From Klebsormidium nitens (taxonomy: Eukaryota; Plantae; Klebsormidiophyceae), in the NCBI GenBank assembly GCA_000708835.1, contig DF237294.1:36362-100361 (forward strand): 64,000 bases of DNA. Reading direction: 5' to 3'. The notes under the pieces were generated by a model. That model was not told the DNA's origin, did not search any database, and saw only the letters and a program-made list of their open reading frames with translations. Position numbers and translations under genes: made by a program. This document shows, in pieces, positions 31,801-61,577 of this stretch (positions within the stretch are counted from its first letter, which is position 1; every line of letters begins with the position of its first letter).

Positions 31801-34800
31801 TCTCAGCATCAAAGGGAAAGAGCTGCAGGGTGAGCTTCCCTGCTGGCTGCCCCTCGTCCTTGCCCGCTGCGTTCCCTTGGCCGCGCACGGCCCTGGCATC
31901 CCCCCCGGCCGCGTGGACCCCCACCACGTGCCCCTCTGCTGGCAAGCCCCCAGTGCCAGGTGGCCCCCTGCCCTTCTCCGCCGCCATTTCTCTCTGTCCG
32001 GCCTCCAGCTTCTCCAGGTGCGCCGCTGCTGCAGCCAGACCGTCCAACGAAGATGCCTTGCTGGCCTGCTCGCCCCCACCATTCTCCACAGCGGCCTTCC
32101 GAGGCCGTCCGGGTCCCCTGCTGGAGGCTAGGCTTGCCTCTGAGACGCTGCCCACATCATTGATCACCTCCCCCGCTCCCTTCCCCCGGCCCTTCGGTCG
32201 CTTGGCTGAGCTGTCGCTCTTTCCTGCTTTATCCTTGACATCAGCCCGGCCCCGCTTGGTGCCTGGCTTTGGTCCGACTGCCTTCTTTCCCCCAGCCGTC
32301 TGCTGCCGCCCCGCCCCATCTCCTTTCTGCTGATAAGAAGACTTTGCCTTCGGGATTCCCTTCCCCGGCAGCCCCTTCTTCTTGCCCATCAAGGCCTGCC
32401 CTGCCGCTGGTGCCGCCCGCGCCTTGCCTCCTGCCCTTGCAACTTTCCCCCCAGTGTCCTTCAACTTCGATTGTTGTGCGCCAGTCTTGCTACCAAACGC
32501 CTCTGCTTCATTCTTCTTGCCAGTGCCAAGATGAGCAGCCGAATTGTTGGGGAAAGGACCTGTTTGTGCTTTGCTGCTGTCGGGTTTGCCGCTTGGCATT
32601 ACTTCCGGGATAGAGCTTCCGCTGCCAGAGGCCGGAGGTCCTGGCTGCCCCGACGCAGACCGAGGGTCGGAGCCAGGGAGCGGGCCACTGGAGGCCTCAG
32701 CCTGAGGTGCCGCCGCGGCCCCTGCTGCTGGCTGCACGGGATTGGCCGCCTGCTTCTTGCGCGCCTTCGACTTCCGGTGCAGGTCGGCGGTGATGGCCTT
32801 CTCGAAGGCTGTCTGGAACTGCTTGTGCTTACGCGGCTTGCGGTGCAGGTCGGTGATGTCGCCCTTGACGTCGGCGCGCACCTGCCACCAGCGCAGCATG
32901 GCCGTGTTGACCACCAGCGGGTTGGAGATGTCCAGGACCATGCCCGGCTGCAGCAGCTTGTTCATCCGCTTGATGCACCGGTAGTAGTAGTGCCGCACCT
33001 GCACCCACGCACACGCACCGTCATTGTGGAAGTTCCGTGAGACAGGAACGACTGCCTTGTTTGCCTCCGCTTGCAACTGTCACTTCCAATGAAGCAAACG
33101 GGGGTAATCAAGAACTGGCGAATGCTTAACAGATTCCAAGAAGTGTACAGGCTATCTTCTGAGAGCGCTCTTGTTTGGGCGCTCTTGTTTCGAAATGAAG
33201 CTCCTACTGACATGCCCCGTCAAGTCAAAAATATGACCTGTGAACAGAAAAGAACGATGGCCAGGTTCGTGCACCTCCAAGAACAAAAAGGTTGTCCAAA
33301 CACGTTTTCAACCTACTAGGTCCAACATTCCAGCACCGATAGTAGGAAGCATATCATTTCACCAGCCTTCAGGTGGGGGACATCATAAAAAGTACAGTGC
33401 ACCTACCTGCTCCTTGTCTTTGCTCTTTACTTTAGCTTGGATCTTCTCAAAGTTCTGCAACAAAACACCAAGTGAGCCAATAGGAAACAAGACGCGAAGC
33501 TTGAGAGACAACACAGGCACAAAGAGAGTCAACGGAGATGCAACTGAACAAATCGTCACGAATATGAGAAGTTGGAATGCATGCTGCAGTTGACGCAATG
33601 AGCAAGTCAAGACACCAGCCTCACCTTGCCGCACTGCCGCAGAGAACTGAAAAAGGCCTCCTCTTCCTCATGCGTCCAGTATGCTGCTTTCTTGGTCTTT
33701 TCAACTGTTAAGAGAAAAGCGAAGATGACATTTGCCGAAGATCAATCACGTACCACATAGGTGCAGGAAACACTTGGATGTGGGCAAAGGACAAGAGTCC
33801 CGATTGAACACCTAGACCTCATGGCCAGGTCTCAGAAGGCAGCTGCAGCTCCTGATCAATATGTGCCTTCAAGCAGCAGAGTGGTTGCGGGTCTCACTTA
33901 TAACATGTCTAGCCGCAGGGGTTTCCGTTCTGATAGGCAGTACATAGGAGGGGAGCATAATCGGTTCTGGAGAGAAAGTCTCCTCTACTAGAACACAAGC
34001 AATCAAACAACGCTTTTGCTTTCACCAACACCTGCCGAAAGTAGAAGCCGCACATCAGCAAGATCGGAGCTAACCTGCAGTATCTCCAGACCCAGCCTTG
34101 ACGAAATCCTTTTCTTTCTCTGCACCTACTGCTTCTTTCCCAGTCGGCGCTTGTTTCACTGCATCACTCCTGTCCCCACTCAGAAGGACGCCCTCGATCG
34201 CCATCTGCTTTTTCCCCTCATCCTCTTCCGCCTGCTTCTCAAGCCTGCCCTCTGCCGCAACAGGATGCGCCTCATCCTGGGGAGCAGTCACAGCGCTCTT
34301 GCTTGTCTTGGGCGCACTCTTGCTGTCCTTGCGTCCCCGCTCCTTACTCTCCCTGCTGTCTTGGTCAAATGTCTGGCTCTGCTCCCTGGCCGCATTCTCC
34401 AACTCCCTCCTCTCCTTCTCACTTACTCTAGCACTGCTACGACAAGGACGTACAGGGATGGTATCGGGCAGTACACCAGGCTTAGGCTTTGACAACTGAC
34501 AGCCCTCGTCTGACTGGCTCCCAGCTCCCAGATGATTGCATTTGGCTTGCCCAGCAGACTCTGGCAAGGACCCGGACGGAATTGCATGCGCCTGAGCTTC
34601 TCTGGATTGGAAAATTTGTTCAGGCTGCAAATCTATGATTGAGTTAGAAGCGTCTGTGGGAACACGAGCAGTGCCAATGCTTCCGTCGCTGACAAACAAT
34701 TCCACCCCTCGCAGAACCTGTGCCGTTCTACTCTCCTCAGGCGCGTCCAGCCCCGCCCCTGCTCCTCCAGCTTCGCTGCCAATATTGGGAAGGCCACCAG

Positions 34801-35784: not shown

Positions 35785-37878
<2,094 letters not shown>

Positions 37879-39378: not shown

Positions 39379-42300
39379 TCAGAAGCTGGTGACGACGCCC
39401 AGGCCACTCGTGTTGCCCGGCCGCGAGAAGATGATCTACAGGAGTAGGCACAAGGTCAGAGAGCAAAGTCCGAGCGGCAGAGGCAGAGAAGTAGGGGGGC
39501 CCGGCGCGCATAGGCCGGGGCCGCTGCCCTCGCCCCGCAAAAATGGGGAGCAGCACAGCACTCAGAGCACACGTGTGAAGCGGAGCAGCTAGGCATTGAA
39601 CCGCAGCTTCCTTGCTGGAGCGGCGAGCTGCTTTGGGCTGGCTGGCCCGTGGCGTACCTGGAGGTCGCCGATGGTCCGGGTCTGGAAGCCGGCTGCGCAG
39701 TATGCAAAGTAGTAGTCCCACGTGCGGACGAACTTGGGGCCGAACCCCATCGCCTCGATCTCGCTGCAGCAAACAGGACGGATGCCGTTACAACCGCGGT
39801 GATAGGCGGAGGCGGCCAAGCGGAGGGGCACGGCCTGGCCTGGGCGGGCAACTCGAGGCACCCACCCCAGAACGAGGACGCGCTGCGCAAACGATTGATG
39901 ACCTGGCGAGGCCCCAGCAGTGGCAAGAACGCCCGAGGCGATGCACAGCCACGTGATCACTTCATCAGCCTCAAGCCCTTGCGCGCACCTCTGCTTTTCG
40001 TGGAAGGTGTCCCTCCAGCGCAGCAGCGTCGGCACGTAGTGCACCCCGATGTTCTCCACGCCCTCCACACTGCAAGCACACCACACACGCCCACCACATC
40101 ACCGCCCCTCCGTAGCACCGTTACCCGCAGTTTTTCACGAGCAGCGGCTGGGCCACCGACAAAAGCGGGCCTCGCACGGGCAGCTCTAAAGCGGCAGCCA
40201 AAGTATCACGGGTGCTCGTTGAGGGCACCCAAGAAGCTCCGGCCTCTTCGGAGTTTCAGCTTTCAAAGGGATCAGAAGTCGGGGACTTGTCCCATCGGCC
40301 CCGCGGCAGCTCACCAGAGGTTGGAGTGGGTGGTCATGGCCTGCATCAGTGCTGTGAGGGAGGGGCAGCAGGCGCCGGGGAAGATGTACTCCTTGATGAA
40401 GTCGGAGCTGCAGCGGTACTCCTCATACCGCTCCTCCGGCGTCGTGATCACCTGGCACAAGTGGGAGTGCAGTCAGACGGAAAAGAGCCGCAGACGTGGC
40501 CAGGACAAAGAGTGGACGAGAATGGAAGAAAACAGCACGGACCGAAGCGCTTGTGATACAAAGTCTGCCCTTTCTTCAGTTCAAACCTCTGGCGCATCTG
40601 ATGTCAGGGAGGACCGTTACACCCTGGGTCTTCCGGAACTTTCAACTGGATCCGACGGGCCCCAGCAAGAGCAAGTTTCTTGTCCGTTCCATAGTACCAG
40701 CATCCTTTCTACTTCCATTCTTCTGCGCTCCTGGACCTGAACCAAAAAGCAAACAATAGATCCTCCTATAACCAATCCGGGTCACGTCCACTTATCGAGC
40801 CCTCCGTATTGATTGCTTCTGTGCTGAACATTGATTTCGGCTCCCTGTTTGGTGTCCGAGCCATCGGGCAGGCGCCCTCTCCTGCACACAGGGCCACCGC
40901 GGGCAGTGGTGGGGCTTGGCGGGCTTACCTGCACGACCATGATGCCGTCGGGCGCGAGCAGGCGGTCGCAGTGGTGGAAGAAGTCGGGGTAGAACTCGTG
41001 GCCCACCGCCTCCAGCATCTCACTGCACACCACACAAGGGCGGACGTCAGCGCCACGTGCCAGCACGCCCGCAGATCAGGGAGCTCGTCCGTGCCACAAG
41101 ATGTCTTCAAAAGAGGGGCAAGCATGGCGCATTCGGCAAGGCGGAAGCGACTTGACGTCGTCGATGACGAACTCTGATACAGCACTCGGCTCATCCGCCA
41201 AGCAAGACAGTCGACCTCGTCGTACTGTGCTCTGCTGCTGCTGACGCTGCTCAAGCAGTGCGCGCCGGGGCTGCTGCTCACCAGGAGACGATGCGGTCGA
41301 AGGTGCCGATGCCGGGCAGCGCGCGGTAGTCGCAGAGCATGAACGAGATCTTGGCCTGCAGCCCCGCGGCCTTGACGCGCGCAGTGGCCAGCTGCAGCTG
41401 CTGCTCGCTCAGCGTGATGCCCGTCACGTGGCACCCCGTGCGGCGCACCAGCTCCATCGACATGCTGCCCCACCCGAACCCGATCTCCAACACGTGGTGC
41501 GACGACGTGATGCGCGCCTGCACCGGACCAGTGAAGCAACGTTAACTGCCGCACCGTTGATAGTCGTCCGAGGCCAATCTTAGCGTGTCGAACACACACC
41601 ATGTAAAAAGCAACAATGTAACTTTGTCGACACGACATCGAAGTCGGTGCCTTCGGTCTGCGGTCTGACCCTCCTGCACACACGCATTATTGCAATCCCA
41701 TCAAAGCGGCTGCTTACACTCACGCAAAGTCACAATCCGAGCTGCCACGCTACTCAGAAGCTAGGAAGTAGGATGCCAGTGCTGCTTGAGAAGGGCTTAG
41801 CCGTGCTGCGTGGCCCGGCAGGGTGGCCCACCTTGTCGATCATTGCGTGCAGCTTGCGCAGCTGGGCGTCCTTGAGCGGCTCGTGCGGGGACGCGAAGAT
41901 GGCGCACGAGTACGTCATCGTCTCGTCCAAGAACAGCGAGAAGAGCGCGTTGCTCTGCAGCCAAGCGGGCCGGTGCTTAGGGGAACATGCGACGAAGTCA
42001 ACGCGGCCAACAGAAGCCGGAACTTGGAAAGCGGATGTCACCAACGGCTCAAAAGTGCGATAGGATTCAAAGACGCTTGCTGAAGCAGCAGCGTTTACGC
42101 AACGCCTTTCTGCTCATCCGCGGTTCCCGACTTGCCGAGGCCCAGCCTACTCGGGCAGGGTCAACCACGCCCGCGGCTCACCAGGTCGTAGTGGTCTGCA
42201 ATGTTGCGGCGCGCGTTGGAGAGCGTGTTCTTGCGGGTCAGGTGGCGCACGTACGACGCCCCGGACCCCACCGCCGCCGTCAGCAGCGCGGGGCTCCACC

Positions 42301-45300
42301 ACCCCCTGCACCGCCGCACTGAGAGTGCTCAGCCGCACAATGCAGACGACAAGAGCTGCTCGATTGGCCGCAAGATTGTCTTTGCTTGTGCAGGCACAAG
42401 CTACAAGGCGGGGCCCAGACACGAAAGATGAGAGGCGGCGATGCTGAAGCGGGAGGCTCCTTCGAAACAATGAAAATAGCAGACGGCATCGTTTCAGTGA
42501 GATCTGGCTGTAATGAGTTGCTGGGCGCCTCACCTCTTCTTGGCGCGCACCTGGCCGGGGCGGCGCGTGCGGTCGCGGTTGACAACGAGCAGCATGAGGA
42601 AGTCCATGACGTCCGGGAGGCACGTGAAGTCGCCGTCCACGTACGCGTCCGCAATGCCCAGGTCCGCGCGCGTGGCCACTTTCCAGTAAAAGGCCGGCGC
42701 GTGGATGCGCAGACCAACCACAAAGTGGCGGCCATCGCGCGCCTGCTTTGCGCTGATGTCTCCCGCTGCCTGCCCGAAGCTGTACACGGAGCCGCCGTCC
42801 TCGAACAGCCTGCGGGGCACACAAAGGGACGCCGCCTCAACAAGCCGTGCACGCAAGGTGAGACATTTTCGTGCAGACTTTTACAAGCAAAACTCTCGGC
42901 AGCACCACGAGGAGGCCGCAGAACAGACATATATAGAGCTCCTGCTTACTGTTGCACTTCTCATCGAGTTGCAAGACGTTCAGCCCGTCTGAAGAAGCCC
43001 TCAAGACGACCGATCAGTGAAAACCCAGTCGCCAGCCGCGCCGCGTGCCTCACCGCAGCGCTCCCAGGTGCACGAACTGGCGGAGGAAGGCCAGCACGGC
43101 GGCCTTGGCCACGGACTCGGCCCAGGAGGGCGCCATCTGGCGCGGGTACGGCAGCGGGGCGAACGGGACGCCCAGCAGGCTCTTGGCAGCGACCAGGCCC
43201 GACTTGAAGCCGTCCTCGTGGAAGCCGTACCCCTGCACGCAAGCACGCAGCGCTCGTGGGAGATGGAGCAATGAAAGGACGTCCTTCATGTCCTTTCTCA
43301 GGCACATCCCGCCTTTATCGCATACTTTGCTCGCTGAGGGGGCCAGTTCAGAAAGTCGCATTAGAGCAGCTTCCAAGCAAGGGTCACATGGCTGCAGCAG
43401 ACTCTTTCAACCATCCGTCTCTTTTGCGGCTCCTGGCTGCCGCTGGCCTCACCTGGTAGGCCCCGCAGAACCAGATGCGGTCCTGACCCTGGACGGAGGG
43501 TAGAGCCCGGGAAGCGGCTGCCGCGGCAGGGCTGGGGACGGGGTGGCTGGTGGTCCACTGAGAGACGATGTGGGCCGGGGGGGTCTGCGGGTTGAGGGTC
43601 ACCAAGATGGGGGCGCCCGTGTCGCCCAGGTTCTGCGCGAGTCGATGCTCAGCGAGTGTTAGCGTGTCCACAGCATGCTTGCAGGTGTTGGCTCAAGTCA
43701 AATCCCAGAAACGCCAGCACAGTGGTAGCATCAGCTCTTAACAATGATGCCACTGTGCACAGGAACGTGAGCAGAGTCACGGAATTTGAAGAGATTAGGT
43801 GTACGGGGCGAGGTTCCGGGTTTGCAGGGGCTCAGGTATGGCCAGTATTCTTTGGTATGTGCCGCAGGGCTGACCTGCAGCTTGTTGAGCCAGTAGGTGA
43901 CAGAGACTTTCCCGGCGGGGCTGCCCAGGAAGTTCCAGGCACTCCAGGCGGCGGGGTTGCGGGGCATGTACGCAGGGTCGCGGTGCAAATAGATGTCACT
44001 GCGCGCACAGCAACAGAATGTCACGACCCAGGAACAAGCATGAGCAGCCCTATGAGGCGCGTTAAACCTGTGCCAGATCTGGATTTCAGAAAGCTTTGGG
44101 GGTGGTCATAGCTTGAGCCACAGAGACCTGCCGACAGAGATGGCCTGAAGTTGCGCCCACCTCTGGCTGTACGTGTGTGCCCCCAGGATGTGCTGCTCCG
44201 CCGAACTGGCGGACTTGCCCAGCAGCGTGAGAGCGTCCGGTGCGTGCACCGCCATCACCACGCGGTCAAATGTCGCGGTTGCGCCGGCCGCATCAGTGAT
44301 CACCACTCCTGCAGGGAAGCACCCACCACTTACATGAAACTCACTTCTGTACTTGAGGAAGGTTTCTGGAAGTGGGGCCTGAATACCCCTGGACATGCGG
44401 GTATGTGGATCTGGACCTCACGAAGATCGGAAGGGCGGGATTGTCTACTCAAGTTCTGGTGTCGGTCAGCAGGTCTGATTGTCACACCATTCGTACATGG
44501 CAGGACGCCATGCTGGCCAACCGCCTCTCCAGCCCTGCTTACCTGATGTAGTGCGCTCCACGCTTGTGACGGGCGTGCTTAACCTGATCTCCGACCCCGC
44601 AGCCTGTAGCTTGGCCACAATCTTGGCCACATAGGTCTGGGAGCGGTTGGTGACCGTCAGCCAGGGAGGGCGCCCAAAGATCTGGGAGAGGAAGGAGGCA
44701 TGCCTGTCAGGGAGCATCAATGGTCAGAGCTGTCTGAACTGCAGGCCACTGTGTTGAGAAGCAGACGGGATGACGAGAGAGCCTGCCGTGTCCACAAGAG
44801 TGTGCCCGGCCCGCTTGCCTGCAGCATGTGGTGGTTGCGCAGGAAGCTGAGGATGGCGCTCGCGGAGCAGCCCAGCACGCCCTCCGCGCCGCACGACCAA
44901 ATGGCCGCGCACACGGGCACCAGATAGCAGTCGCGGAACTTGGCGGAGTAGCGCCGCGCGGCCAGGAAGGCGCCCAGCGTCTCATTGGGGTCCAGCGCGG
45001 GGTCGGCGGCCTCGAGGCGGGCGAGGTAGGCCAGGACGTCGGTGTGGAAGAGCAGCATCTCGCGCAGCATGAGGATGAAGTGCGGGTTGGCCAGGTTGCG
45101 CTTCTGCGCAAAGAGGCCCGCCAGCCCGGTGCTGGCCCACTCGCAGCCCTTGCCGCCGTCCAGGCTCACCGCAAACGACATGTCCGACACCTCCGTCTCC
45201 ACCCCAGCCTCCTCGAACCAGCGCACCAGGTTCGGATACGTCACGCTGCACAAGACAAACAGGGCGCGCATCACCCAGTCTGCACCTTGAGCAGAACCAC

Positions 45301-45689
45301 CGGCGTCTGGCCAAGCCCGCATCAGCTGCTGCAGCCCGTGCTTCCATCAACAGGGCAGCCACTGTGCTGCAAGCCCAAGGTGGTGGTACTTCGACCCGTG
45401 GGCAAACAGAATGCAGTAGCCCGATCACAGTCTGGCTCCGGCTTGCCCCAGATCGCGATGGTGCTTGGACTCTGGCTACCCCACGGCAATGAGGTGGCAC
45501 TCACCGGTTGAACACCATGAAGCCCACATCGACGGCGTGGCCATCCACCGTCTGCGTCCAGGCGTGCCCCCCGACATGGGAGTCCTTCTCATAGAGAACC
45601 ACTCTGTGCCCCGCATCCACCAGAGCCCACGCTGCGGCCAGGCCCGCCACCCCACTGCCAACCACCGCGATCCGCTGCTGGGCTGACAT
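39379..45689 (-). CDS. Two-domain cyclopropane-fatty-acyl-phospholipid synthase: N-terminal FAD-dependent oxidoreductase (amine-oxidase-like) fused to C-terminal Cfa-type SAM methyltransferase
   Basis: About 15 exons join in phase with no internal stop. N-domain: [62 protein letters not shown]-domain: [78 protein letters not shown]. Stop at 39379-39381. Confidence 0.93.
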
Positions 45690-46832
45690 TATGCTTATGC
45701 GTAATGGGACCGAGATCAGCAAGCTCTACTAACAGAGTGGCATCACACAGGCGCAATGTGACTGCCACCGAATGAGCGCCCACCACCACTGCAAGATCGG
45801 CTCGGCTCAGGGCACGCCGATGAACAGGATCGACCCCGCTTGGACTTGAACAGTAGTGCTGATCACAGTATCAGACCGGGACGCACATGAAAGCAGACTG
45901 ATACCTTCTCTCAAGGCAATGCAGCACAATGGAGTGATGTGCAGACAGTTCTGGCTATGGTGCGTCACCAGGTTCAATTTTCAAAGCCCTGCACAACACT
46001 TTAAACTGTGAACAGTGAACTGTGTAACTTGTCAGTGTTTATGTCAATGATGAGATCCAAGCCAGAGATCCTTTCCAAGCGGAACTGCCACCCAAACAAT
46101 TGGAGGCAAACAATCATTGGATTCGTCGTGGATCACGTGGTCAATCGACGGTCATCGACGGAGCGCAGAGATTCATCAGTTGATGCATCATGAGTATTTG
46201 ATGACGTTTTCTCGCAGATACGTGACGTTGCCCGCCGCTTCTGCGATGGTGCTGAAGGGGATATTTGGCAGGGGGGGAGGCGTGACGAAGCAATGGCGGC
46301 GCCCGCCACATGATGAGAGGTACCGTAGTTGGTACCGTATTGCGTGCCTCAAGGGAGGCAGGCAGCTTCTGAATCTGAGCTACCTAAATTGATTGGCCCG
46401 CCAACAACAGCACCTCCCTCTTCAAGTTCAAGCTGAAATGGGCAATGGGTCTCTGAGAATTCTGATGGGCAGAATGGAAGCCGTGACGTTGATCTGAGTC
46501 TCTCCTTCTGTACAGGCAAAGGCAGACGGACCAGGGTACAGCAGGATAAAACTTGCAAGTGCGGCATCAGACCTTGAAGGAATGGCCAGCTTCTTGTTTG
46601 CCAGCTCCTAATCAAGCAGCTTATGAGCAGATCTGTGCAAAGCTTGTATTAAACCAGGGCACAGTCCAGTGCCTTTCCAGATTCTGCGGCGTCCTCCTCT
46701 ATACAGGCCTGCGGGGCCGGTATTTTCGAGGATCTCCTTCTGGTCACACCCCTTGACCCCAATGCCGTTGTGAAAGCGCTGGAGCAGGTGCCTGCTGCAG
46801 CAGGGGATGCGTCCCGTGCGCTGGCCTCAGCA

Positions 46833-49800
46833 ATGGCAACAGTCCGGCAAACGGCGCTGCATACTGTTGCGCCCCCGGATGCGGAGAGCAAGCTGCTTGG
46901 CGGCGAGGCGGGGACAATGCACGAGGGATCATGGCAGGAGGGGGCAGCTCCAGCTGGGTCAAAGAGTGCTTGGGTTGAATCAGGGCGGGAGAGGGCTGCC
47001 TGCGACTGCTGTGCGAACAGCCTTCCTGCCGCAGTGGCAGACAGGCGGCCGGGGGGGAGCCATCCTGCCGAATCTCCTTCAATAGAAGGCGGGATGGCTC
47101 CAAGCAGCACAGAACCTGCTGCAATACGGATCAAGCCGGCCAATGGCTGGGATCAGATTGTGAGCCGCCGAGCGGTGCCCTGCGATTCCGCTAAGGATCA
47201 GCGGTGGACATTTGGCGATGGGACGGTGTCGTTGTGGGAGCTGGTGGCGGGGGTCAACTTCCAGGTGTATGCGGGCATCCACGTGTGGGCGCTGGTGGCG
47301 GTGCTCCAGTGGCGCAGCTGGCGCCTCGTGGGCCTGTGCGCCGCGGTGTACGTCCTCAAGATGTTTGGCATCACCGGCGGCTTCCACCGCCTGCTCTCGC
47401 ACAGGTCAGCACGATCCAGCCGTCTGGAATACCGGAAGGTGCACTAGCTCCAAGGCTGCCTGTGTGACTGCTCCTATTCCACAAGGTGACACCTTTACCA
47501 GTGTATAGGTCTGCTGACCGCCTGATTTGAGGACATGTGCAGATCAGCATCAGGCTCAGGCCCGCAGAGTCCTGAGCGCGCAACTTTGGAACTTACTTGG
47601 TGCTAGAGGTCCGCAGCCAGTAGCCCATGCCGCAGGGCCCCATTCTGGAGTTTTCAACACAGCCACCCTTTGTGTCTTACTTGGGGCGCTGGTGAACAAA
47701 GCTGGGGAACAATCCAGAGTCTCCCATTCACGCCAGTTATGGGCCTGCTCGATGACAGTTCTAGAAGCTGTCTTTGCAATGAGCTCTTGGCAATCGATGC
47801 ACTTTCTTCAGCTAAGTCCGTGCGATCATAACCCAGAATCTGTCACTTCATAGGTGTATTGTGCGGGCAGCCTATACTTCTGCCAGCCGTGAGGTTGAAT
47901 CCAAACTCCACAAAGATTCATGCCTGCTGCAACTGCCCAAGCGCCGGCCCTCAGAGTCTTACTGGGCCTGACTGCCGTACTGGTGGGTGTGTCTCCGTTG
48001 CAGGTCCTACAAGACCTCGCGCACTTTCCAGTTTGCGATGGCCTGGCTAGGGTGCTGTGCATTCCAGAAGGGCCCCCTCTGGTGGTGCTCCCACCACCGC
48101 CACCATCACAGGTAAGCCCCATCTCCCCGCCGCTGCACTGCCAAGCAAACTGAGCTGGTGCGTATGCACCCCACCATCGCACTTGCTTGGGGCAGGCAAT
48201 TGGCGCAGATGCGGCAGCGTCAACGGCTGAGGCTGCAGCATGTCACTTATCACGACTTGCAAATGAGCCGCAAGGTGCCCTCATTGAGCAAACCAGTCGC
48301 GCAGTGGGCCGATGCGAGAAGTTGTTTGGGTAAGAGTGCTCTTGAATGGCGCCCATGCTTAGCCTATTTTTGTGCAGGACTGCGGACACTCCGGCTGACG
48401 CTCACAGCCCCGTCCAGTTCGGCTTCTGGTGGTCCCACGTCGGCTGGTGAGCAGCCCATGACTGTGCCCTCCTCCGCAGCATATGGCCCTGACTACCGGC
48501 CACAGCCATGTGTGGATGGCCAAATAGACGTCTCAAGGCCACCATTTTGGCCTCCAAGGTGGCAATTGTCAGTCTGGCATGTCTGGCCTGGGTTTGAACC
48601 CGGTCCAGAGCTGAAGAGCAGGACGTCTGGTGGTAGTACTGTGAGCGAGCGACTCAAGCTATCCCCAGTTGGCGTCTCCCCCTCTGCAGGTTGCGGCTGC
48701 CCTGACCTGGCCCTTTCCCTTGGCCCGCAGGTTCCTGTGCAGCACTGCCAGCATGGACGCACGCCTGGAAGCTGTGCCCGACCTGGTGCGCCGCGCGGAG
48801 CTGCGCTGGCTGGACAAGTGAGGCCCCACCCGCAGCGCTTGCGGGGAACAGAATGGCTGCTGGGGGCAGCGCAACTGAGGAAGGCAGCACATGACAGCGT
48901 TCACTTGCCAGCGTTAAACTCGGGTCATAGTGCCTACTTCCACCGTCCTTGTGTCCCTATGAAGCACGATTGTCCCACTTTGGTTGCTTTGGACCGGCGG
49001 CCTTCCGACTTTGGCATGTCCCCGAGAGAACAACCTGCCATGAGCGAATGAAAGCCGGCACGAGTTGCTCCTAGCTCTTCTCCCTGCGTTGCTCCACTCT
49101 CCCCGCCCGTCCTGTGCATCACGCACGTTTTGCCCGGCAGGTACCACTACATCCCCCCCTTCCTGCTGGCGGTGGCTCTGTATGCGGCCGGCGGGTGGCC
49201 GTACGTGGGCTGGGGCTTCATGCTGAGCAACGTCCTGTGCTGGCACGCCACGTAAGCAAGCCGCACTCGCTGGTGGGGCCTGACCCTCAAACGAGGAAAA
49301 TCTGCTTGTGTGCATCAGGCACAGAGCTGCCCCTCTTCAGTGCATATCGTCGCAGGATTCGGTGACGGGCTGCTCTTGGCAGGAGCGAGCACTGCGCCTA
49401 TGGACACCTCTGTCCGTAGGTGCAGCTGCGGGTGTGGATTCTTTCTGGCGTGCCTCCAATGCGTGCACCAGAGGCCGCTTCGGCAGACCGTAATGAGGAA
49501 GACGATCCCTGCCGAATAATTCCTAGCCTGCGCCCGAAAACGTGCTGAGTGAAGCCGCACTGGCCGCATGGCAATCCGGATGCCCGGGAGGTTCGTCATT
49601 GCCGTAGGGACTGACACATTGAGTGTCGGTGTCAAACAGAGCGCCGAACAGTGGTCAGGCGGGCATGGCCTCCTGGTGTGGCGCGGCGTGATCATGACGC
49701 GCGTGCCTGGTGCAGGTACTGCATCAACAGCCTGGCGCACCTGGTGGGCCGGCGGCGGTACTCGTGCGAGTTCCAGACGCACTGCGACGCGCGCAACAAC

Positions 49801-50456
49801 GCGTGGCTGGCGCTGGCCACCCTGGGGGAGGGCTGGCACAACAACCACCACTGCTACATGCGCTCCGCCAAGCACGGCTTCTACCCTCACGAGATCGACG
49901 TCACGTACGCACTTCTGCGCGGCCTCGCCGCGCTGCGCCTCGTGTGGGACCTCGAGCTGCCGCCCATGCACCAAGTGAGCGCGCGCGCACCCCAATGTGC
50001 TCGTGCGGTGGTCGGACCGAATCCCAAACCGCAGGAAGTGGGCAACGCTGGTAGTGTCTGCGTGAGCCATTGGGACACCCCTTCTCTTGCTCCGTTTGTA
50101 GATCGTCCTCGACCTTAGTGAGCGACAATGCCAAGCAGGCAAACTCATCCTTGTGCAGGGCGCAACTTAAACGCCTGTGGGAAGGCGAGTCGCAAGATCG
50201 GGGCGCTGTGGAGTGAGAGATGTTCAGTCGTGCAAGAAAGTGTTCGTGCTCCGGCAACATCACTGAAACTTGTGGGGAGGCCGTTGAATACCCTGGTCAC
50301 ATTTGGGTATTAGTTGACAGGGTAGTTGGGGCGCAGAACCGTGTTGATTGGCTCCGTTTTGTGGTGCAGCTGGAGGCGCGGCGGCTGGGGCGGGACCTGT
50401 ACGAGTGCCGCTGCGACCAGGTCGGGGAGGACCTCCGACAGGTCGAGCAGGAGTGA
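46833..50456 (+). CDS. Membrane-bound Delta-9-type (acyl-CoA/acyl-lipid) fatty acid desaturase-like protein; start uncertain (open frame extends to a splice acceptor at 46681)
   Basis: Exons ..47404, 48004-48111, 48378-48446, 48731-48817, 49141-49251, 49716-49974 and 50370-50456. Three His boxes HRLLSH, HRHHH and HNNHH; also HSP...GFWWSHVGW, INSLAH and GEGWHNNHH. Confidence 0.92.
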
Positions 50457-54335: not shown

Positions 54336-54801
54336 GGCTCCTTATGCTGAGCTCCGCGCGCCGAGCGCGTTATTACATTTACATTTATTGTTTGCATGGA
54401 TGACAGCCTTATCCGCTGACGACATGCTGACCACAATGCGTGCCCCCACAAAGGTACACTTGGCATACCTATCCGGCCGCAATTATGCCAGGTAGGACCT
54501 AGCAAGAGGACTCAGGAGTACACAGCTTGGAGGAGAGCCTGAATGGCGCGCCGGAGGTGATGATCCATCGTCAGTGCAGCTCGCTGCGGCCCACATGGGC
54601 GCATCCGATGGCCGCATGGTCACCCCTGCGGCAGAGGCCGGGGAGCTTGTGAGGAAGCCAGTGCGGGCAGTGGCTCGAGAAAGTCGGGATACCGTTACGT
54701 TTCTGTGCACCAAGTAAGACTACCCTATCAGTGTATCAGTCAGCTGGAGCCTGAACTTTTTGGGCCGTTGTCAAAGTTGCCTTTGTTTGCAGTCGGCCCC
54801 C

Positions 54802-57800
54802 ATGGCGCCGCCGTCGCTCTTGTTATGCTCCTTGTCCCTTTGCTTCCTCCTGCTGTGCCCGACCGTGAGCGGGGCCACCTCACCAGCGTGCAATGTGTCG
54901 CTGCCGTGCAGTGACATCTTCTGCGGGCAGGGCGGCTTTTTGCAGGCAGCCAATGCGGCCAACATCTATGCGGACCCCAAGAGCATCGTGGACCTGCCGC
55001 TGAAGAACGCATCTGATGCGACAATTGCCGCTTTCCAGCAGCTGCAAGCCCAGAATGGCGGCAACGCATCTGCAGGTGCGAATGTCACGACCGTCTGTAT
55101 TGCAGTTTGCATCTGTGATCCGTGTCATCGTCGTCATGCGTAGGAGCTGTCGTACGTTGATCCTGCGGGTGTTTGTTAGTAGTTGCTGGGGGACGTCTTT
55201 TTGCCGAGCCTTAAGTGAGGTACCATGTTGCTGAAACGGGAGGCATACAGAATGTACTCTGGCCATGCTTCCAGACTCTAGGGCTATCGTGACGTTCACG
55301 AATACGCCCCCCAATCTGGTTAATTCCAGTATGTTGCTGGAAGCATTCTTGGTGTCGCAATCAGCGTCGGTTCACTTCAGAAAGCACTGGGAACGTTTTG
55401 CAGACCTCGTCAGAGGGCCCCTGTCCAGCACAAGTTCTCTTCTATGGGGGGGCTGGGTACTTATTTCTCCTTTTGGATGTTTGAAGAGTTCGAGTAACTT
55501 CGACAGATTGGCAACGTGACCTTTCCTTTGGTTGTTGCTTCTTTTACTCAAGGTCTTCTTTGAACGCAAGCACTGGTCCTATGCAGAAAGGAGAAGACGC
55601 CCAAGATAACAACGAAAGCAGCCGCATGAATTTTCTCCGAGCATTTCAGAGGATGCGAATTGACCTGTACATATTGTAGGAGGGTTGGGGATCATTGGAC
55701 AGGCGCTTTAGTTGTTGCAATAGACCATGCCTCGGGGCTAGCTCGTGGGCTAGCTTAGCGAGGTACATAGCTGTCCAAAAGTTGACCAGGAAAAGAAACT
55801 CAAGAGATGCAGTAGTGGTGAGGGTGTGTGGAGTGAAGCAGAAACGTGTATGCATGCGTCCAAGAGAACTTCAAGCTAGGCTGGACAAATGGTTGCCAAA
55901 AGCCAGCTGGACTCCTAGACTCCTAGACTGCCAGCTCGCTAGGTTACTCTAAAACCTGGCCCTTGTTCTCAGTTCTTCATCAGCGAAAAACATATTACCA
56001 CCCTCTACCAGGTGTGTGTACGTTTTAGGAATCTCCGATGCTTCTGTCACTGGTTGATTGGTATTGTGAGCTGCAAATGTTATCACACCAAGCAGGTAAT
56101 GTTGTCCAATCTCTCTTACCGGTTCATACGGCATGTCTCACCAACCTCAAGCTGGTCACACTTGGGCTGTCAAGTGCAAGAGGCTGTGGCCTCAGCGTAG
56201 ATTGTGCACTTCCAGCATCCAATTCTCCATTTCAATCTAGCTCTCCCCCTTGCCAGGTCAACTCCAGGCCTTCATCAGCCAGTACTTCGACCAGCCCGGG
56301 AGCGACCTCGTTGCGTACTCCCCCCCTGACTTCACCCCTGTTCCGTCTGGCTTCCTGCCCACCCTTGCCTCCGATGCTGCGAATGGCAGCTGGCGCAACT
56401 GGTCGCTGGCAGTGCACCAGATTTGGCCGCAGCTGACACGCACGGAGGCCGCCAATGTCTCCCAGCAGCCGGAGCAGCACTCTCTGCTGGCACTGCCGCA
56501 GCCGTTTGTGATTGCGGGGGACCGCTTCCGGGAGCAGTACTACTGGGACTCCTACTGGATCATCAGGTGGGGGCCAGGGCAGGGGCATGCCTTGACCCGA
56601 TACTTGTGCCTTTTCTTTATGCCGTGTGTCTTAAGGTCAATTGGAGACGTTAAAATTGTTGAACCAATAGGTGTCTACCTGCGCCTGCTCGGTTGAGCCC
56701 CGCTTTTAGACAGACATAAGGACAGTCACGTCACCTCCGAGGAAGCTGGCCGCCTTTGTCAGGCTTCCTTGTCACCTTGGACCTCCTTTGGTGCCTCTGC
56801 TGTGCCTCTGGATTTCGTTTTGACCTGCATGAAGTGAGGCCCCTCTGCTGCCCTGCCTGTGCAGGGGCCTGCTGATCAGCAACATGAACGTCACCGCCAG
56901 CAGCGAGATGGCCAACCTGCTGGCCCTGCTGCAGCGCTACGGCCATGTCCCCAATGGCGCGCGCTCCTACTACATCAACCGCTCCCAGCCACCCCTCCTC
57001 AGTCAAATGTGGGCACTGCCGCCCTTACAACAGGATTTGGTCCATCCATGCACAGCACGCACTTCCCTGAACGAATTGTCAATTGCAATTACTACAGTGT
57101 GTGGGGGCATGCACTTGATCATGGTTGTCAGTGCTCCTTCCCTCCTGCATGTACAGACTTGCCCCTGCAACCCCTGAGTCTGGCCCTGATTGGCTGGTGC
57201 AGGGTGCGGTCCGTGTACGAAGCGACCCAGAACACGTCCCTGCTCCAGTATGCAGTCCCCCTGCTGGTGCAGGAGCACACCTACTGGACAACAGGTACCA
57301 TGCATAGCCGCTGCCGTTGGCCTTTTGTCATCAATCCGAATCAAAGCGCAGTCCTGTCATGCTGGCTGGAATCTGATGTCTGGGGCAGGCAACTTTTGGC
57401 GCCCCTTTTGGCCCTGACTGCCTTGCTTCCTTGGCTGGTGCGTGCAGCCCCCAAGCAGGTGACGGTGGTGGCGCCCAGCGGGCAGCTCTACAACCTCTCC
57501 CGCTACTATGCCGAGTGGGATCGCCCGCGCCCAGAGTCCTTCGCACAGGTGAGGGCGTTGTTCCTTTAAAATGGGGTCTGGACAGTCATGGTGATTGTCG
57601 AACAGGATTGTAGTTTCGAATGTCCGCATAATCCACCTTGAAGATGACAACTCACCAGACAGGGGGAGAACCTACCCTTGGAGACATTCTCGATGAGCTT
57701 GGCTGTGTTGTCCATGTCGAGGGCCTTTGAGTAGCCTCGTCTTGTTCGTCGTTGCAGGACAGCAACACGAGTGCGGGCCTGGACCCCGTGGCTGCCAGCC

Positions 57801-59769
57801 AGCTATACCGCGAGCTGGCGTCAGGGGCGGAGTCAGGGCAGGACTTCTCATCCCGCTGGTTTGCGTAAGCACAGTACTCATCACGTTCTATCCTGTTCAT
57901 CTACGAAGTAACAGCAGTTTCGGTCAGCAGGCAGCTGAAGTACTGACTTTTCTTCCCTTCTTATTGGTTTCGTCTTTCTGGCGTTCCCTTTGCCACCTCG
58001 TATGCTGCAGATCTCAGGATTGCGGTCTGTTAAAGGAGTTTCGCCTTTAATCTGCAAACGCTTGTATCACCCTTCACCCCATCTGGCCCGGCCCTGTGCC
58101 ACCCTGTCTCACCCCGTACCCGCTCCCCCTGCAGCGACGGCCAAACGCTGCGCACGATCCGCACCACGAGTATCATCCCCGCGGACCTGAACGCGTTCCT
58201 GCTGCTCATGGAGCGCAACATCGCCGTCTTTGCCAACGTCACCGGCAACTCCTCCCTTGCTGCGCAGTTCACGGATTTCGCCGCCGTGCGTCAGGCCGCC
58301 ATCGACGCTGTTTTGTGGAGCCCTACCCGGGGTTGCTGGACCGACTTCGTGCTCGACGCCAACGCGTCTGCCGCCAACGGGTCCTCCTGCCCGGCTGTCT
58401 ACACGGGCGCGCAGCGCAATGGCTCCGTGTACGCCGCCGACTACGTCCCGCTCTGGGCGGGCGCCTTGCCGGCAGGTGTGCCCCGATGCTCGAAACGCTG
58501 GTTCAAACGTTCGAGCCAGCGCTCCGAGAGTTGAACTCTGTTCCGGCTGAAGGTCCTGACCAAATTAATTGCTTGAGTGTAGAGTGGCCAGGCTTGTCGG
58601 CAGAAGCAGATTGCAATGCACCCCTCCCGCTCTGTGCTGGCTATGGCAGAAAAGACGCCGATGTAGTCCTTATGTTTCCTGCCGCTGAACCGAGCGGGTG
58701 ACGGCATGCGCAGGTGACGCGCGGCTGGCGCAGTTGGTGGCGTCCCTCAACGGCTCGGGCCTGATCCTGCCGGGCGGCATCACCACCTCCCTCAACAACA
58801 CGGGCGAGCAGTGGTGAGTACGGCGGGCAGCCGCAACCACGCACCGCGCAGGCTGCCCTCGCCCTTCTTCCGTGGCGGTTGGCAAGAGCGCAAACGTTCT
58901 GATGGTCTCGTCTGTGCCGTCGTCTCCGGCATGTCGATCGTAGCATCCCGCGTTCCCGTGGCCCCAGGCCCGCTCTTCCCATGCCATGCCCGTTGGTCAA
59001 AGAGCATGCTTTCCTGGGTGGCCGCGCCTGACCCCCCTTCTGTCGCAGGGACTACCCGAACGCGTGGCCGCCGCTGAACCACATGATCATCGAGGGCCTC
59101 GCGACGGCCGGAGGTGACGGCGCGGCAGCGGCCCTCGCGGCCGACCTGGCGCAGCGCTACCTGCGCAACGCATTCCGCACCTTCTACGCCACAGGCGGGC
59201 TCATGAGCGAGAAGCTGGACGCCGCGCAGCCGGGCACGCCCGGGGGGGGCGGCGAATACAGGCCGCAGGTGAGCTCACCCTGCACGCTTTTGACGCGCAG
59301 ACCCGTGAGGTGGCCTTGTCATGCCCCGGAAGCGGGGGCTGACTGCGACTATAAGGCCGAGGGTAGTTGAACAGGCGTGGCCGGCTCCGACAACTCCGAT
59401 GCAGCCCGGAGTGCGTCCCCTACTAGAAACTTGATCGAGCAGCAAAAGGTCGGTTCTGTGGCATGCAATCCTTGTTCCTCTACATGCCTGAGTGAGCGGA
59501 CTGGTCCGGGTTGCACGGTGGTCGTTCATACGGAGCAGCCTTGTTGCGAGGTTTCTCTTTCATGTGGCCCTGCGGCTCCTTGTGTTCAGGTCGGCTTTGG
59601 TTGGAGCAACGGGGTCGCCCTGGACCTGCTCAACCGCTATGGAGCACTGCTGGGGGCCCCGCCAGCCGACGGCACCGCCAGCAATGGGACACTTACCGGC
59701 ACCACCGGCGGGACTGCCAACGGGACTGCCAACGGGACTGCCAACGGCACGTCGTTCACCAATCCTTAG
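54802..59769 (+). CDS. Secreted alpha,alpha-trehalase (GH37)
   Basis: Signal peptide [25 protein letters not shown]. Motifs [55 protein letters not shown] and [15 protein letters not shown]. Exons join in phase; stop TAG at 59767-59769. Confidence 0.93.
59710..59745 (+). repeat. Coding tandem repeat, 3 x 12 bp (GGGACTGCCAAC), encoding (GTAN)3 in the trehalase C-terminal tail
   Basis: Three exact copies read directly from the sequence. Confidence 0.9.
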
Positions 59770-61577
59770 AAGAAGGGCACCTGCGGTTGCGAGTTGAAGG
59801 CCCCTTCTGACTCAAGATGGTGGGTTGAAGAAGTTGTGAGAAGTTGCAGTGCCGTGTAGTAGCTGTCTTATGTAAGAGCCTGCCGCATTTTGCATGACGA
59901 GGCGGCAATACTTTTGTGGGGAAGTATGGGTAACAATAGGTCCCGTATCGAGGACTTCAGATCCTAGGCGTTGATGCGAGTAGTAGGTCTTAGACGGAAG
60001 TGTCTACGTATTTAAGCGTCAAACTTAAGAGTCAAACTTTAGGTTGCCATATCTGAGGAGCTTAGACACAGGGAAGCATAGTTTGAGGTAGTGCTTGCAG
60101 GTCGCATGCAAAGGCAGTGATTGCTATAACATGAGACGATGATGGCTAGGTCTAGGGGACTTGCTGCTTGCGGAACCATGGCAGGTATGCTTGTGTTGCT
60201 TGCACTGTCTTTGGAGAGGAGTAAGTTTAGAGGACGGCGTAATAGGCTTGAGAATACGAAGTGTAGTTTTAGGATACTTGAGGTCACTCGCATAGCTAAG
60301 TTGTTGGCGGCAGCCTGCATATATGCGGCCACAGCCGGGCCGGCTTTGTATGTGCTATATTTTCACAATCAATCCAGGAACTGTCAGTCCGCAAAATCTG
60401 ACCATCCTCGAAGATTCGCGTGTTGGCCTTGGTTTTAGCAACCAAAAAGTGATGCCGAGTCAAGTGAAAAGCGAATTGTCACGCATGCCTTGACGGTTTT
60501 CGTTGCCGACCATTCGAGTTTCAAATTACGGAAAGTCTTAACCATTTTAACAACGCCCGGCAAGAAATGGCTGGCGGCTGCCCCGGGCCCACGCCCCCAT
60601 CATGCATGCAGCAGTCTGAGCAAAGTAAAGTCGGACTAGGTCACTCTAGTGCCGCACAACATCTTTACTGTCACTCCTCGCTACTATGCCTCCCTCACTG
60701 ACAAAATATCGGATATTGTTATGGAGGCCTCGCACATGGCAAAGTACGTGCTAAGTTTGAATTGCGTCGCGGCGCGAGCCGATTGATGGTGAACGATTGT
60801 TGGATTGTAGCCTGGCCGCGCCCCTGCAAACCGACCGAGATGCTCAATCGATGGAGCGCAACAATACTGTGACAGCACAAACGAGAAGCCTCATTTGCTA
60901 TTCGGCTCTCATCGACAACTTTCTGAGCTGCTGCACATGGAGTGCGATGCGAGGAGCTGATTGAATGGGCAACCAAAGTAGGTAGTTGAAGGTCTCAATG
61001 TATATTTATGGCTGCGGAAATGAGCTCCTGTCAACACTAATAATATACAAGCTCGTTCGCTGACATCGCCTGCATGACATGGCGAATGATCTGCATCTGC
61101 GGGCCGCGGCTATGGGGGACCCCGGGCCGGTAGTACCGGTATTTGGCTGCCGGGCGGCCTCCGACTCCCGCCGAGTCCGCAACCAGGCGCTGCATGCCAA
61201 TGCCCGGGCCCGCCGCCCCTCGACCGCCGACTTGATTGACCGTACTCCGCCCCGCTTGCATGAATCCAGGAAACCTGCGAGAGAACAAATACGGTACGCG
61301 GTAACGCGGGTATCATACCTACCTAGTGTGCACTGTGCACAAATATAAATTCGTTCGGGGCGGCCGGCCTGTTGTCACTCGTGGCCCGCCCCGAACCGAC
61401 TAAAATTAGATCAATCACTCAAATTTCAATACCTATATAATCACCGGTACGTGCGGTCCCACTTCCGACGTCGAGGCGGCCGGGCGGCCTGCCGGGGGTG
61501 CGTGGGCCGTGGCCCCGCGCAGGACTCATTCCACCGGTAGTACCTACCTATAAGCTATAGGTTATAAAGTACCGCAT

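Follow-up and report, generated by a model that had tools for sequence, protein, structure and literature searches.

A head-to-head gene pair in Klebsormidium nitens, a FAD oxidase–CMAS fusion and a Delta9-type membrane desaturase, as a possible algal counterpart of a bacterial lipid operon

The window analyzed here, a 64-kb stretch of Klebsormidium nitens contig DF237294.1 (assembly GCA_000708835.1), contains a fusion gene and a desaturase gene that lie head-to-head and are transcribed outwards from a common spacer, with 1143 bp from ATG to ATG. Window positions 36833–60456 are 100% identical to that contig. GenBank models place an 871-residue Amino_oxidase+CMAS protein at 39379–45689 on the minus strand and a 430-residue FA_desaturase protein at 46833–50456 on the plus strand; the limits of both models coincide exactly with those of the original prediction, which was made from the sequence alone. 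The three activities assigned there (FAD oxidoreductase, Cfa-type methylase, and desaturase) likewise hold, as Pfam and NCBIfam profiles matched individual exon pieces (NAD_binding_8/Amino_oxidase, CMAS, and FA_desaturase). Both genes are spliced and transcribed in RNA assemblies from four studies. The features discussed below are the following:

39379–45689, minus strand: fusion gene, 871 residues, ~15–16 exons (GenBank model and Pfam; the 3′ end at 39379 is that of the annotation)
41282–41517, minus strand: fusion exon with the SAM-binding motif VLEIGFGWG of the CMAS domain (Pfam CMAS 4.8e-17; NCBIfam CPFASynBruc/CfaB)
44681–44819, minus strand: GC-AG intron of the fusion gene, intron bases 44682–44818 (predicted, then seen in RNA contigs)
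45505–45689, minus strand: fusion exon 1, with the start codon at 45689 and the FAD-binding motif (RNA junction 45505|45245)
45690–46832, no strand: spacer between the start codons, 1143 bp, with both 5′ UTRs inside (RNA contig ends, four runs)
46202–46491, plus strand: three TGACGTT motifs (46202, 46223, 46484), two of them within the 9-mer GTGACGTTG (motif count)
46833–50456, plus strand: membrane desaturase of the Delta9 type (SCD/OLE1-like, Pfam FA_desaturase), 430 residues, seven exons (GenBank model, hand-built CDS, RNA)
47385–47404, plus strand: His box 1 (HRLLSH) at the end of desaturase exon 1 (sequence)
48004–48111, plus strand: desaturase exon 2, with FQF..QKGPLWW and His box 2 (HHRHHH) (sequence, RNA contigs)
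49716–49974, plus strand: desaturase exon 6, with His box 3 (GEGWHNNHH) (sequence, profile matches)

The fusion protein consists of an N-terminal FAD amine-oxidase-type domain resembling UfaD and a C-terminal SAM-dependent CMAS/Cfa domain, both in a single GenBank product of 871 residues. Exon 1 alone matches NAD_binding_8 (2.7e-16) and Amino_oxidase (1.3e-14). Each half is colinear with bacterial proteins over ~420 residues, the FAD half with bacterial FAD proteins at 37–40% identity and the CMAS half with operon-encoded Cfa proteins at 36–37%, while the fusion as a whole is colinear with those of Cyanidium and Guillardia (38–39% identity over ~890–960 residues). The transcript can be followed in 3.4-kb RNA contigs from the 5′ UTR across exons 1–5 and for another ~2.1 kb, and RNA contigs confirm the junctions 45505|45245, 44819|44681, 44543|44308, and 44161|43998; the GC-AG intron, whose ends read CT..GC on the plus strand, is spliced in the contigs of all four runs. 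A hand model of 894 residues with exon 4 starting at 44365 was rejected, as the RNA gives 44308. The predicted combination of a FAD domain and a CMAS domain with its SAM motif in one transcript corresponds to the architecture of plant-type cyclopropane synthases, and homologues of the two domains are encoded by the FAD and Cfa genes in FAD-DUF1365-Cfa modules.

The desaturase CDS was rebuilt by hand as 46833–47404, 48004–48111, 48378–48446, 48731–48817, 49141–49251, 49716–49974, and 50370–50456. All introns are GT-AG, and introns 1–4 are seen in spliced RNA contigs from four studies. A loose RNA contig end at 49254 reads into exon 6. The full-length protein carries PF00487 and an N-terminal extension of ~130 residues, and its last exon matches the SCD1 chains 4ymk and 4zyo, SCD1 structures being recovered at 1e-6 from one exon. 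The signature FQF..GPLWW..HHRHHH..HSP..GFWWSH.GW named in the original prediction was found, as was GEGWHNNHH. The three His boxes (HRLLSH, HRHHH, HNNHH) stand in Delta9-type spacing and are invariant across an alignment of 17 sequences; together with GEGWHNNHH they form the likeness to SCD1 (4ymk), the DesA family, ADS/FAD5, and CMJ201C.

Judged by RNA contig ends, which only approximate transcript ends, the fusion mRNA begins at ~45939–45994 and the desaturase mRNA at 46244–46335, so that the two 5′ ends lie ~250–400 bp apart on opposite strands. The segment at ~45995–46243, uncovered by the main mRNA contigs, is taken as a putative shared bidirectional promoter. Because this gap measures at most ~0.4 kb, the co-regulation originally proposed for the pair is plausible. 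The 9-mer GTGACGTTG occurs three times in 64 kb against 0.42 expected, with two of the three copies inside the spacer, and TGACGTT is also present in the corresponding spacers of two further Klebsormidium-lineage genomes (L091 and L090); the enrichment is weak since the pattern was chosen after looking. No core-promoter block common to the three Klebsormidium-lineage spacers was found, only the last ~114 bp before the desaturase ATG being alignable with the L090 spacer. Nor does the window contain a match to CAACGTTG, the electrophile response element of Chlamydomonas.

The suspicion that this is no ordinary ADS was supported by pairwise identities: 34–41% to the single ADS-like comparator (P0007) versus 45–55% to bacterial desaturases and 50–67% within an algal clade. 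Neither land plants nor chlorophyte members of this clade appear among the top database matches. Assignment to the Pseudomonas DesA family (NF049918) was rejected, as the K. nitens protein scores 60.5 bits against a cut-off of 400 bits, which the bacterial operon desaturases also miss (70–82 bits). The eukaryotic desaturase clade is monophyletic (100/97) with a branching that follows the species tree, and is not placed within the operon-linked bacterial subfamily in a tree whose backbone lacks resolution. As judged from this tree, the clade, which unites streptophyte and red algae, is old and vertically inherited, and the desaturase is no recent transfer from bacteria. Red-algal relatives are annotated as ordinary ER acyl-lipid Delta9 desaturases (PMC4928187), and we infer that these enzymes (CMJ201C) are linked to the K. 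nitens clade.

Bacterial clusters joining such a desaturase to FAD and cfa genes, as mentioned in the original prediction, do exist. Of the 80 best bacterial loci, spread over at least eight phyla, 12 have the desaturase on the same strand as, and 0–142 bp from, a FAD, Cfa, DUF1295, or lipocalin gene; given the copy number of Cfa genes, fewer than one locus in 80 is expected by chance. The nearest bacterial desaturases are operon neighbors of FAD/Cfa cluster genes. Pfam gives the order DUF6134–lipocalin–desaturase–Amino_oxidase–DUF1365–CMAS for L025; L054 lacks the lipocalin but is otherwise arranged almost alike, and in seven of the eight FAD-carrying loci the desaturase is followed by the FAD gene at a gap of ~30–140 bp (L081 is reversed). 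Apparent bacterial desaturase-FAD and desaturase-Cfa fusions were discarded, as the 782-residue ORF of L054 and the 833-residue stop-free stretch of L028 proved to be genes in different frames. A DUF1365 + FA_desaturase protein of 962 residues (P0436) was also rejected as a Rosetta-stone fusion and attributed to misassembly of the same operon because its contig (L087) has many broken genes.

The published representative is the Stenotrophomonas smlt2375-2367 operon, which encodes two Cfa proteins and a lipocalin besides a desaturase and a FAD oxidoreductase; all of these genes are up 165–700-fold in a chrR mutant in a sigmaEc-dependent manner (PMC11832516). The resemblance to the algal locus lies in a membrane desaturase (acyl-CoA-type in the bacterium), a FAD oxidoreductase, and Cfa methyltransferase functions occurring together, in Stenotrophomonas as one co-regulated unit; equivalent clusters were found at L025, L030, L039, L049, L054, L055, L059, and L081. 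The bacterial unit is co-linear with four to nine genes, including DUF1365, DUF1295, DUF2878, DUF6134, and lipocalin genes, whereas the algal locus comprises two divergently oriented genes, one of them uniting FAD and Cfa, and lacks the other partners within 64 kb: two DUF1365 protein queries found no match in the window by tblastn, and neither a DUF1295 nor a lipocalin gene occurs there. Direct adjacency of the desaturase to FAD and Cfa genes is nevertheless present in the alga, though in divergent orientation. That the algal pair matches the bacterial operon is a post hoc observation.

Several characterized systems contain parts of this set. The furan fatty acids of Rhodobacter and Rhodopseudomonas arise through UfaM, UfaD, and UfaO (PMC7380195), in a pathway that belongs to the singlet-oxygen response and uses a Cfa-family SAM methylase and a FAD protein, the families of the two fusion halves, a likeness drawn at the family level. 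It differs from the algal pair in having no membrane desaturase in its characterized form and in requiring UfaO (DUF1365), which is absent from the K. nitens window. In plants, the cyclopropane synthases Sterculia foetida CPS and cotton GhCPS1-3 carry a FAD oxidase domain of ~400 residues fused to Cfa, and GhCPS3 and the Arabidopsis homologues yielded no cyclopropane acids (PMC3132707). The algal fusion is alike in architecture, from which orthology would follow by inference; no adjoining partner desaturase has been described for the plant CPS genes. The green-lineage counterpart of the bacterial module is the Chlamydomonas SAK1 regulon, in which singlet oxygen acts via SAK1 to induce CFA1, CFA2, and the genes for DUF1365 and DUF1295 proteins (PMC4067076). 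These genes are stress co-induced but dispersed, and no Delta9-type desaturase is among the induced genes listed. Other eukaryotes keep module members physically joined, as in the FAD-DUF1365-CMAS triple fusions P0278 and P0388 (Durusdinium) and in Cyanidium caldarium (L088), where a FAD-CMAS fusion, 38% identical to that of K. nitens over ~940 residues, also adjoins a module member; there the neighbor is a DUF1365 gene, 27 bp away and tail-to-tail, instead of the desaturase.

Our preferred reading, held at roughly even odds, is that the two K. nitens genes form a co-regulated, functionally coupled lipid-modification module, a eukaryotic counterpart of the sigmaE/ChrR-type operon. A two-gene module is credible, if unproven, because the shared promoter region is short and the same families adjoin in the bacterial operon. 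In such a module, the desaturase would either introduce a cis double bond by Delta9-type chemistry into saturated, lipid-bound acyl chains or tailor a modified chain; the CMAS domain would then add a SAM-derived carbon across the olefin to give a cyclopropane or a methyl-branched/methylene product, which the flavin domain may oxidize, as UfaD does. Should the genome encode a DUF1365 protein outside the window, a furan fatty acid could be the end product. The likely setting would be photo-oxidative (singlet-oxygen) stress. Speaking against the module are the position of the eukaryotic clade relative to the operon-linked desaturases, the lack of DUF1365, DUF1295, and lipocalin genes in the window, the annotation of red-algal relatives as ordinary Delta9 enzymes, and the literature searched, in which no report of unusual fatty acids for Klebsormidium was found.

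Somewhat unlikely, yet to be taken seriously, is a chance adjacency in a compact genome, by which an ordinary ER acyl-lipid Delta9 desaturase would have come to lie beside a plant-type cyclopropane synthase homologue working in an unrelated context. The conservation of the pair speaks to both readings. Two other genomes of the Klebsormidium lineage keep it head-to-head, L091 with a desaturase 91% identical to that of K. nitens and L090 with one at 73%, and in the latter the downstream trehalase block is inverted with the pair intact; this is weak evidence for coupling because the general synteny, trehalase block included, is conserved in these relatives too. Adjacency is absent at the examined loci of Closterium (L002), a second Closterium-like assembly (L092), Porphyridium (L003), and a red-alga-like metagenome organism (L004–L006), so that the synteny expected in relatives holds for the Klebsormidium lineage and fails in the two Closterium-type genomes and the red algae, as chance adjacency would have it. 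The same reading is favored by the age and species-tree-like descent of the desaturase clade, by the treatment of the red-algal ER enzyme as housekeeping (PMC4928187), and by the divergent pairing of neighboring genes, which is common here and was conceded from the start. Against it, the same family pairing recurs in bacterial operons of many phyla and is co-induced in Stenotrophomonas, and module members are joined by fusion or adjacency in other eukaryotes. The odds that a neighbor of the fusion gene would belong to an operon-partner family are ~0.1–0.5%, an estimate based on a K. nitens gene number that we assume to be ~16,000.

The other alternatives concern what the desaturase does and where the pair came from. 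The original prediction raised a dedicated cyclopropane-to-cyclopropene (dihydrosterculate-type) enzyme acting on the CMAS product, which we consider improbable. Removal of hydrogens at C9/C10 of a 9,10-cyclopropane ring would be Delta9-type chemistry, the plant cyclopropane desaturase has not yet been identified, cyclopropenes bind Delta9 desaturases tightly (PMC3132707), and the gene adjoining the fusion is not ADS-like. However, the desaturase has no sequence feature that points to ring desaturation, the same clade occurs in red algae and Zygnematophyceae away from cyclopropane-synthase-type genes, the operon bacteria are known for furan or methyl products rather than cyclopropenes (PMC7380195), and cyclopropenes would inhibit Delta9-type enzymes (PMC3132707).

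It is very improbable that the two genes descend together from a bacterial operon that entered the lineage by horizontal or endosymbiotic transfer and have stayed side by side ever since. The same families do adjoin in bacteria, and an AU test neither establishes nor rules out grouping the eukaryotic clade with the operon-rich bacterial clade (p 0.76, for a clade named only after the tree had been seen), the constrained tree lying 22 lnL units above the quick free tree. Yet the algal genes are divergent where operons are co-linear, and adjacency is missing from the Closterium-type and red-algal loci listed above. Since the eukaryotic clade is monophyletic and tracks the species tree, any transfer would have preceded the diversification of Archaeplastida, and a retained adjacency would require many losses. 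This vertical descent, together with the separation of the pair in Closterium-type and red-algal genomes, gives no support to the earlier suggestion that the pathway may have been kept from bacteria. Finally, a flavin domain serving as the electron-transfer partner (reductase) of the di-iron desaturase is scarcely credible: we know of no amine-oxidase/phytoene-desaturase-type flavoprotein recognized as a donor to membrane di-iron desaturases, and UfaD, the characterized member, is a fatty-acyl desaturase acting on the methylated product (PMC7380195), while in its favor are the desaturase-then-FAD order of the bacterial loci and the lack of an assigned role for the oxidase domain of the plant cyclopropane synthase (PMC3132707).

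Returning to the co-regulated module, a more specific version is speculative and rather doubtful: a mini-cluster that arose within the Klebsormidium lineage under one stress-responsive bidirectional promoter, with a desaturase dedicated to the UfaD/UfaM-like fusion, either forming its specific olefin substrate or desaturating its product further, and furan, cyclopropene, or methyl-branched acids as the output. If true, it would provide the first genetic handle on algal furan fatty acid synthesis and on the role of the flavin domain in plant CPS. If the two genes are unrelated neighbors, a clean annotation of both and a separate algal clade of Delta9-type desaturases remain. The pair bears on the role of the flavin domain, the cyclopropane-to-cyclopropene enzyme, and the furan fatty acid genes of algae and plants, and also on the role of the desaturase in the bacterial sigmaE/ChrR lipid operon, a question so far unaddressed. 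As K. nitens is a culturable streptophyte alga, this two-gene locus offers a small, directly testable mirror of the bacterial stress operon.

A gene for a fusion protein (FAD amine oxidase plus CMAS/Cfa) lies head-to-head with a desaturase gene in the window. Positions 36833-60456 are 100% identical to the K. nitens DF237294.1 locus (assembly GCA_000708835.1), on which the window runs from 36362 up to the last contig position, 100361, and both genes are already annotated there in GenBank, with limits identical to those of the original prediction.

The gene pair as annotated in GenBank (window coordinates)
39379-45689, minus strand: fusion gene; 871-aa product with Amino_oxidase, NAD_binding_8 and CMAS
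46833-50456, plus strand: desaturase gene; 430-aa FA_desaturase product, named stearoyl-CoA desaturase

Domain scans with Pfam and NCBIfam on exon-sized ORFs placed a NAD_binding_8/Amino_oxidase match at the 5' end of the fusion gene, a CMAS/Cfa match in its 3' half and an FA_desaturase match in the last large exon of the desaturase gene. The desaturase CDS was rebuilt using frame-keeping GT-AG junctions, with the 3' end set by the annotated protein; its seven exons encode 430 aa with the His boxes HRLLSH, HHRHHH and HNNHH, and the desaturase signature originally predicted is found in it. For the fusion gene, an approximate 15-exon model was obtained. Elsewhere in the window, no Pfam family matches three long ORFs that overlap or adjoin one another (587, 520 and 456 aa; 28897-33076, minus strand), and an ORF at 24222-25019 carries a PUA-like domain.

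Spliced forms of both genes were present in contigs of four runs from four different studies, and these runs therefore contain RNA. The contigs confirm desaturase introns 1-4 and four fusion-gene introns, including one GC-AG intron (44819|44681), and place the start of fusion-gene exon 4 at 44308. Splicing of the GC-AG intron (window 44682-44818, minus strand) is seen in RNA contigs of four studies. Low-depth unspliced contigs accompany the spliced forms of desaturase introns 1 and 4 (window 47378-48030 and 48790-49170) and could represent retained introns or pre-mRNA. The ATG-to-ATG spacer of the pair is 1143 bp. Fusion-gene contigs stop at 45939-45994 and desaturase contigs start at 46244-46335, so the transcription units are only ~250-400 bp apart, contig ends being approximate transcript ends only. 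The desaturase mRNA apparently has a 5' leader of ~500-590 nt with several upstream ATGs (window 46244-46832); a stop at 46767-46769 closes the reading frame, so that the protein cannot begin further upstream in it, and the annotated start is at 46833. The spacer common to both genes holds a cluster of TGACGTT (bZIP/CRE-like) motifs, with three on the plus strand in window 46202-46491, two of which are GTGACGTTG (3 in 64 kb versus 0.42 expected; pattern picked post hoc). The same post hoc pattern occurs in the spacers of two Klebsormidium-lineage relatives, at 6615 and 6655 in L091 (a Logan assembly) and at 6347 in L090 (a metagenome contig).

Both relatives carry the head-to-head pair, and their desaturases group with that of K. 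nitens at 100/99; the L091 desaturase is 91% identical and the L090 desaturase 73%, being about half as far away in the tree as that of Spirogloea. The synteny looked for under the original prediction extends to L090 and L091. The genes are not adjacent at the loci in Closterium (L002), a second assembly with a Closterium-like desaturase (L092), Porphyridium (L003) and a red-alga-like metagenome organism (L004-L006). A downstream trehalase-like block is also syntenic (window 54400-60300, L090 12249-16763, L091 14702-19989). This block is inverted in L090 relative to the window with the pair intact, placing an inversion breakpoint just past the pair; since general synteny is still visible at the L090 distance, conservation of the pair gives modest support only.

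The last-exon peptide of the desaturase, searched with HMMER against 1.84 billion representatives, returned six close matches followed by a long tail at ~45-65% identity. A word-indexed search that took the homologue from Spirogloea as query identified Spirogloea, Klebsormidium, Closterium, Chlorokybus, Mesostigma and a transcriptome entry as close relatives, with the red algae Porphyridium and Galdieria following after the streptophyte algae and neither land plants nor chlorophytes among its best matches. With an identity of 34-41% to one ADS-like plant protein, the enzyme is not an ordinary ADS. Against the Pseudomonas DesA family it scores 60 bits, the cut-off being 400. Trees with 91 and with 20 sequences unite the desaturases of eukaryotes in one clade (support 100/97), in which the red algae are followed by Mesostigma and Chlorokybus, then Klebsormidium, then Zygnematophyceae-type sequences. 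This order matches the species tree; the gene has been inherited vertically in eukaryotes and was not transferred recently. Judged by sequence, the desaturase is best described as a member of a distinct algal clade within the Delta9-type membrane desaturases.

For the bacterial relatives, the 80 best loci, with flanks of up to 10 kb, came from scanning one genome per species with a desaturase alignment and were searched by tblastn with the exon peptides of the alga and then with the proteins of one bacterial locus. Thirteen carry genes of a module comprising FAD oxidoreductase (UfaD-like), DUF1365 (UfaO-like), Cfa/UfaM-like methylase, DUF1295 and lipocalin genes. At 12 of these the desaturase has its closest module gene 0-142 bp away and on its own strand (FAD gene in six, Cfa in three, lipocalin in two, DUF1295 in one). 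The linked loci span Pseudomonadota, Planctomycetota, Gemmatimonadota, Acidobacteriota, Vulcanimicrobiota, Chloroflexota and Verrucomicrobiota, and 11 of the 13 share a single branch, of 22 members, in the tree of desaturases. The Methylophilaceae locus L025 has the Pfam order CMAS, DUF2878, DUF1295, DUF6134, lipocalin, FA_desaturase, Amino_oxidase, DUF1365, CMAS, and at the Casimicrobiaceae locus L054 the core is almost the same but lacks the lipocalin. In Stenotrophomonas maltophilia, smlt2375-2367 comprises nine genes, including an acyl-CoA desaturase, an FAD oxidoreductase, two Cfa synthases and a lipocalin, and is up 165-700-fold in a chrR mutant and back down without sigmaEc (PMC11832516). 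Desaturase/FAD/DUF1365/cfa clusters, which the first reading had described for proteobacteria, are therefore real, and in bacteria the desaturase and the module are under common regulation. The same operon occurs in a metagenome contig (L087; ENA ERZ25039516 contig_3400) with many genes split or merged; its 962-aa "desaturase + DUF1365" product was rejected, as it looks like an indel artefact of long-read assembly.

The fusion model is colinear with the operon proteins, sharing 37-40% identity with the FAD protein and 36-37% with the Cfa, each over ~420 aa, versus only 24% with the shorter second CMAS gene. Its SAM motif (window 41490-41517, minus strand) has Phe (VLEIGFGWG) where many Cfa enzymes have Cys (I/LxxGCGWG). 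The residue that we take to be His266 of E. coli Cfa is apparently Gln in the fusion (VVQVI). FAD-CMAS fusions were also found in Guillardia and Cyanidium, and single proteins combine Amino_oxidase, DUF1365 and CMAS in P0278 (eukprot g8346.t1, 1176 aa, with a second C-terminal methyltransferase domain), P0388 (Durusdinium, 1085 aa) and P0389 (1149 aa). Bacterial DUF1365-CMAS (~658 aa) and FAD-DUF1365 (~670 aa) fusions are numerous. In Cyanidium caldarium (L088 10001-14343; JANCYW010000005.1) a 999-aa FAD-CMAS fusion lies tail-to-tail with a 438-aa DUF1365 gene, 27 bp apart, a second eukaryotic case of adjoining module genes. Eukaryotes repeatedly hold the module together by fusion or adjacency. 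In Rhodobacter and Rhodopseudomonas its members UfaM, UfaD and UfaO synthesise methylated furan fatty acids (PMC7380195), and in Chlamydomonas singlet oxygen acts via SAK1 to induce CFA1, CFA2 and one gene each for DUF1365 and DUF1295 proteins (PMC4067076).

That the two genes adjoin by chance is a serious possibility, though less likely than not. Several points count against coupling: no synteny was seen outside the Klebsormidium lineage at the loci examined, no DUF1365 gene lies near the pair, the operon match was noticed post hoc, and the desaturase clade may be nothing more than the ER acyl-lipid Delta9 desaturase known from red algae (PMC4928187). The enzyme converting cyclopropane to cyclopropene is not identified in plants (PMC3132707); the proposal that the desaturase fills this role seems very unlikely. 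We consider a retained bacterial operon, the "kept" pathway of the original prediction, decidedly improbable: divergent orientation, absence of adjacency at the red-alga/Closterium-type loci and the species-like desaturase tree favour assembly in the Klebsormidium lineage, or chance. Free trees leave the place of the eukaryotic clade among bacteria unsettled; a tree grouping it by constraint with the operon-rich branch was not rejected (AU p 0.76) and scored above the quick free tree, a result that shows nothing by itself because that group was chosen after tree inspection. Plant cyclopropane synthases carry an oxidase domain without assigned function (PMC3132707), and a flavin domain acting as reductase for the desaturase is scarcely credible.

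The bacterial operon and the plant FAD-oxidase/Cfa fusion are both already published (PMC11832516, PMC3132707); we found no report in the literature of the divergent Klebsormidium pair, its conservation in relatives or its match to a desaturase-containing operon. Whether the desaturase and the fusion gene are functionally coupled appears to us evenly balanced. Coupling is suggested because the pairing of these families recurs in bacterial operons and its co-induction has been seen by experiment, the two genes share a very short promoter region, the pair is conserved within the Klebsormidium lineage, and the module tends to stay fused or adjoining in eukaryotes.
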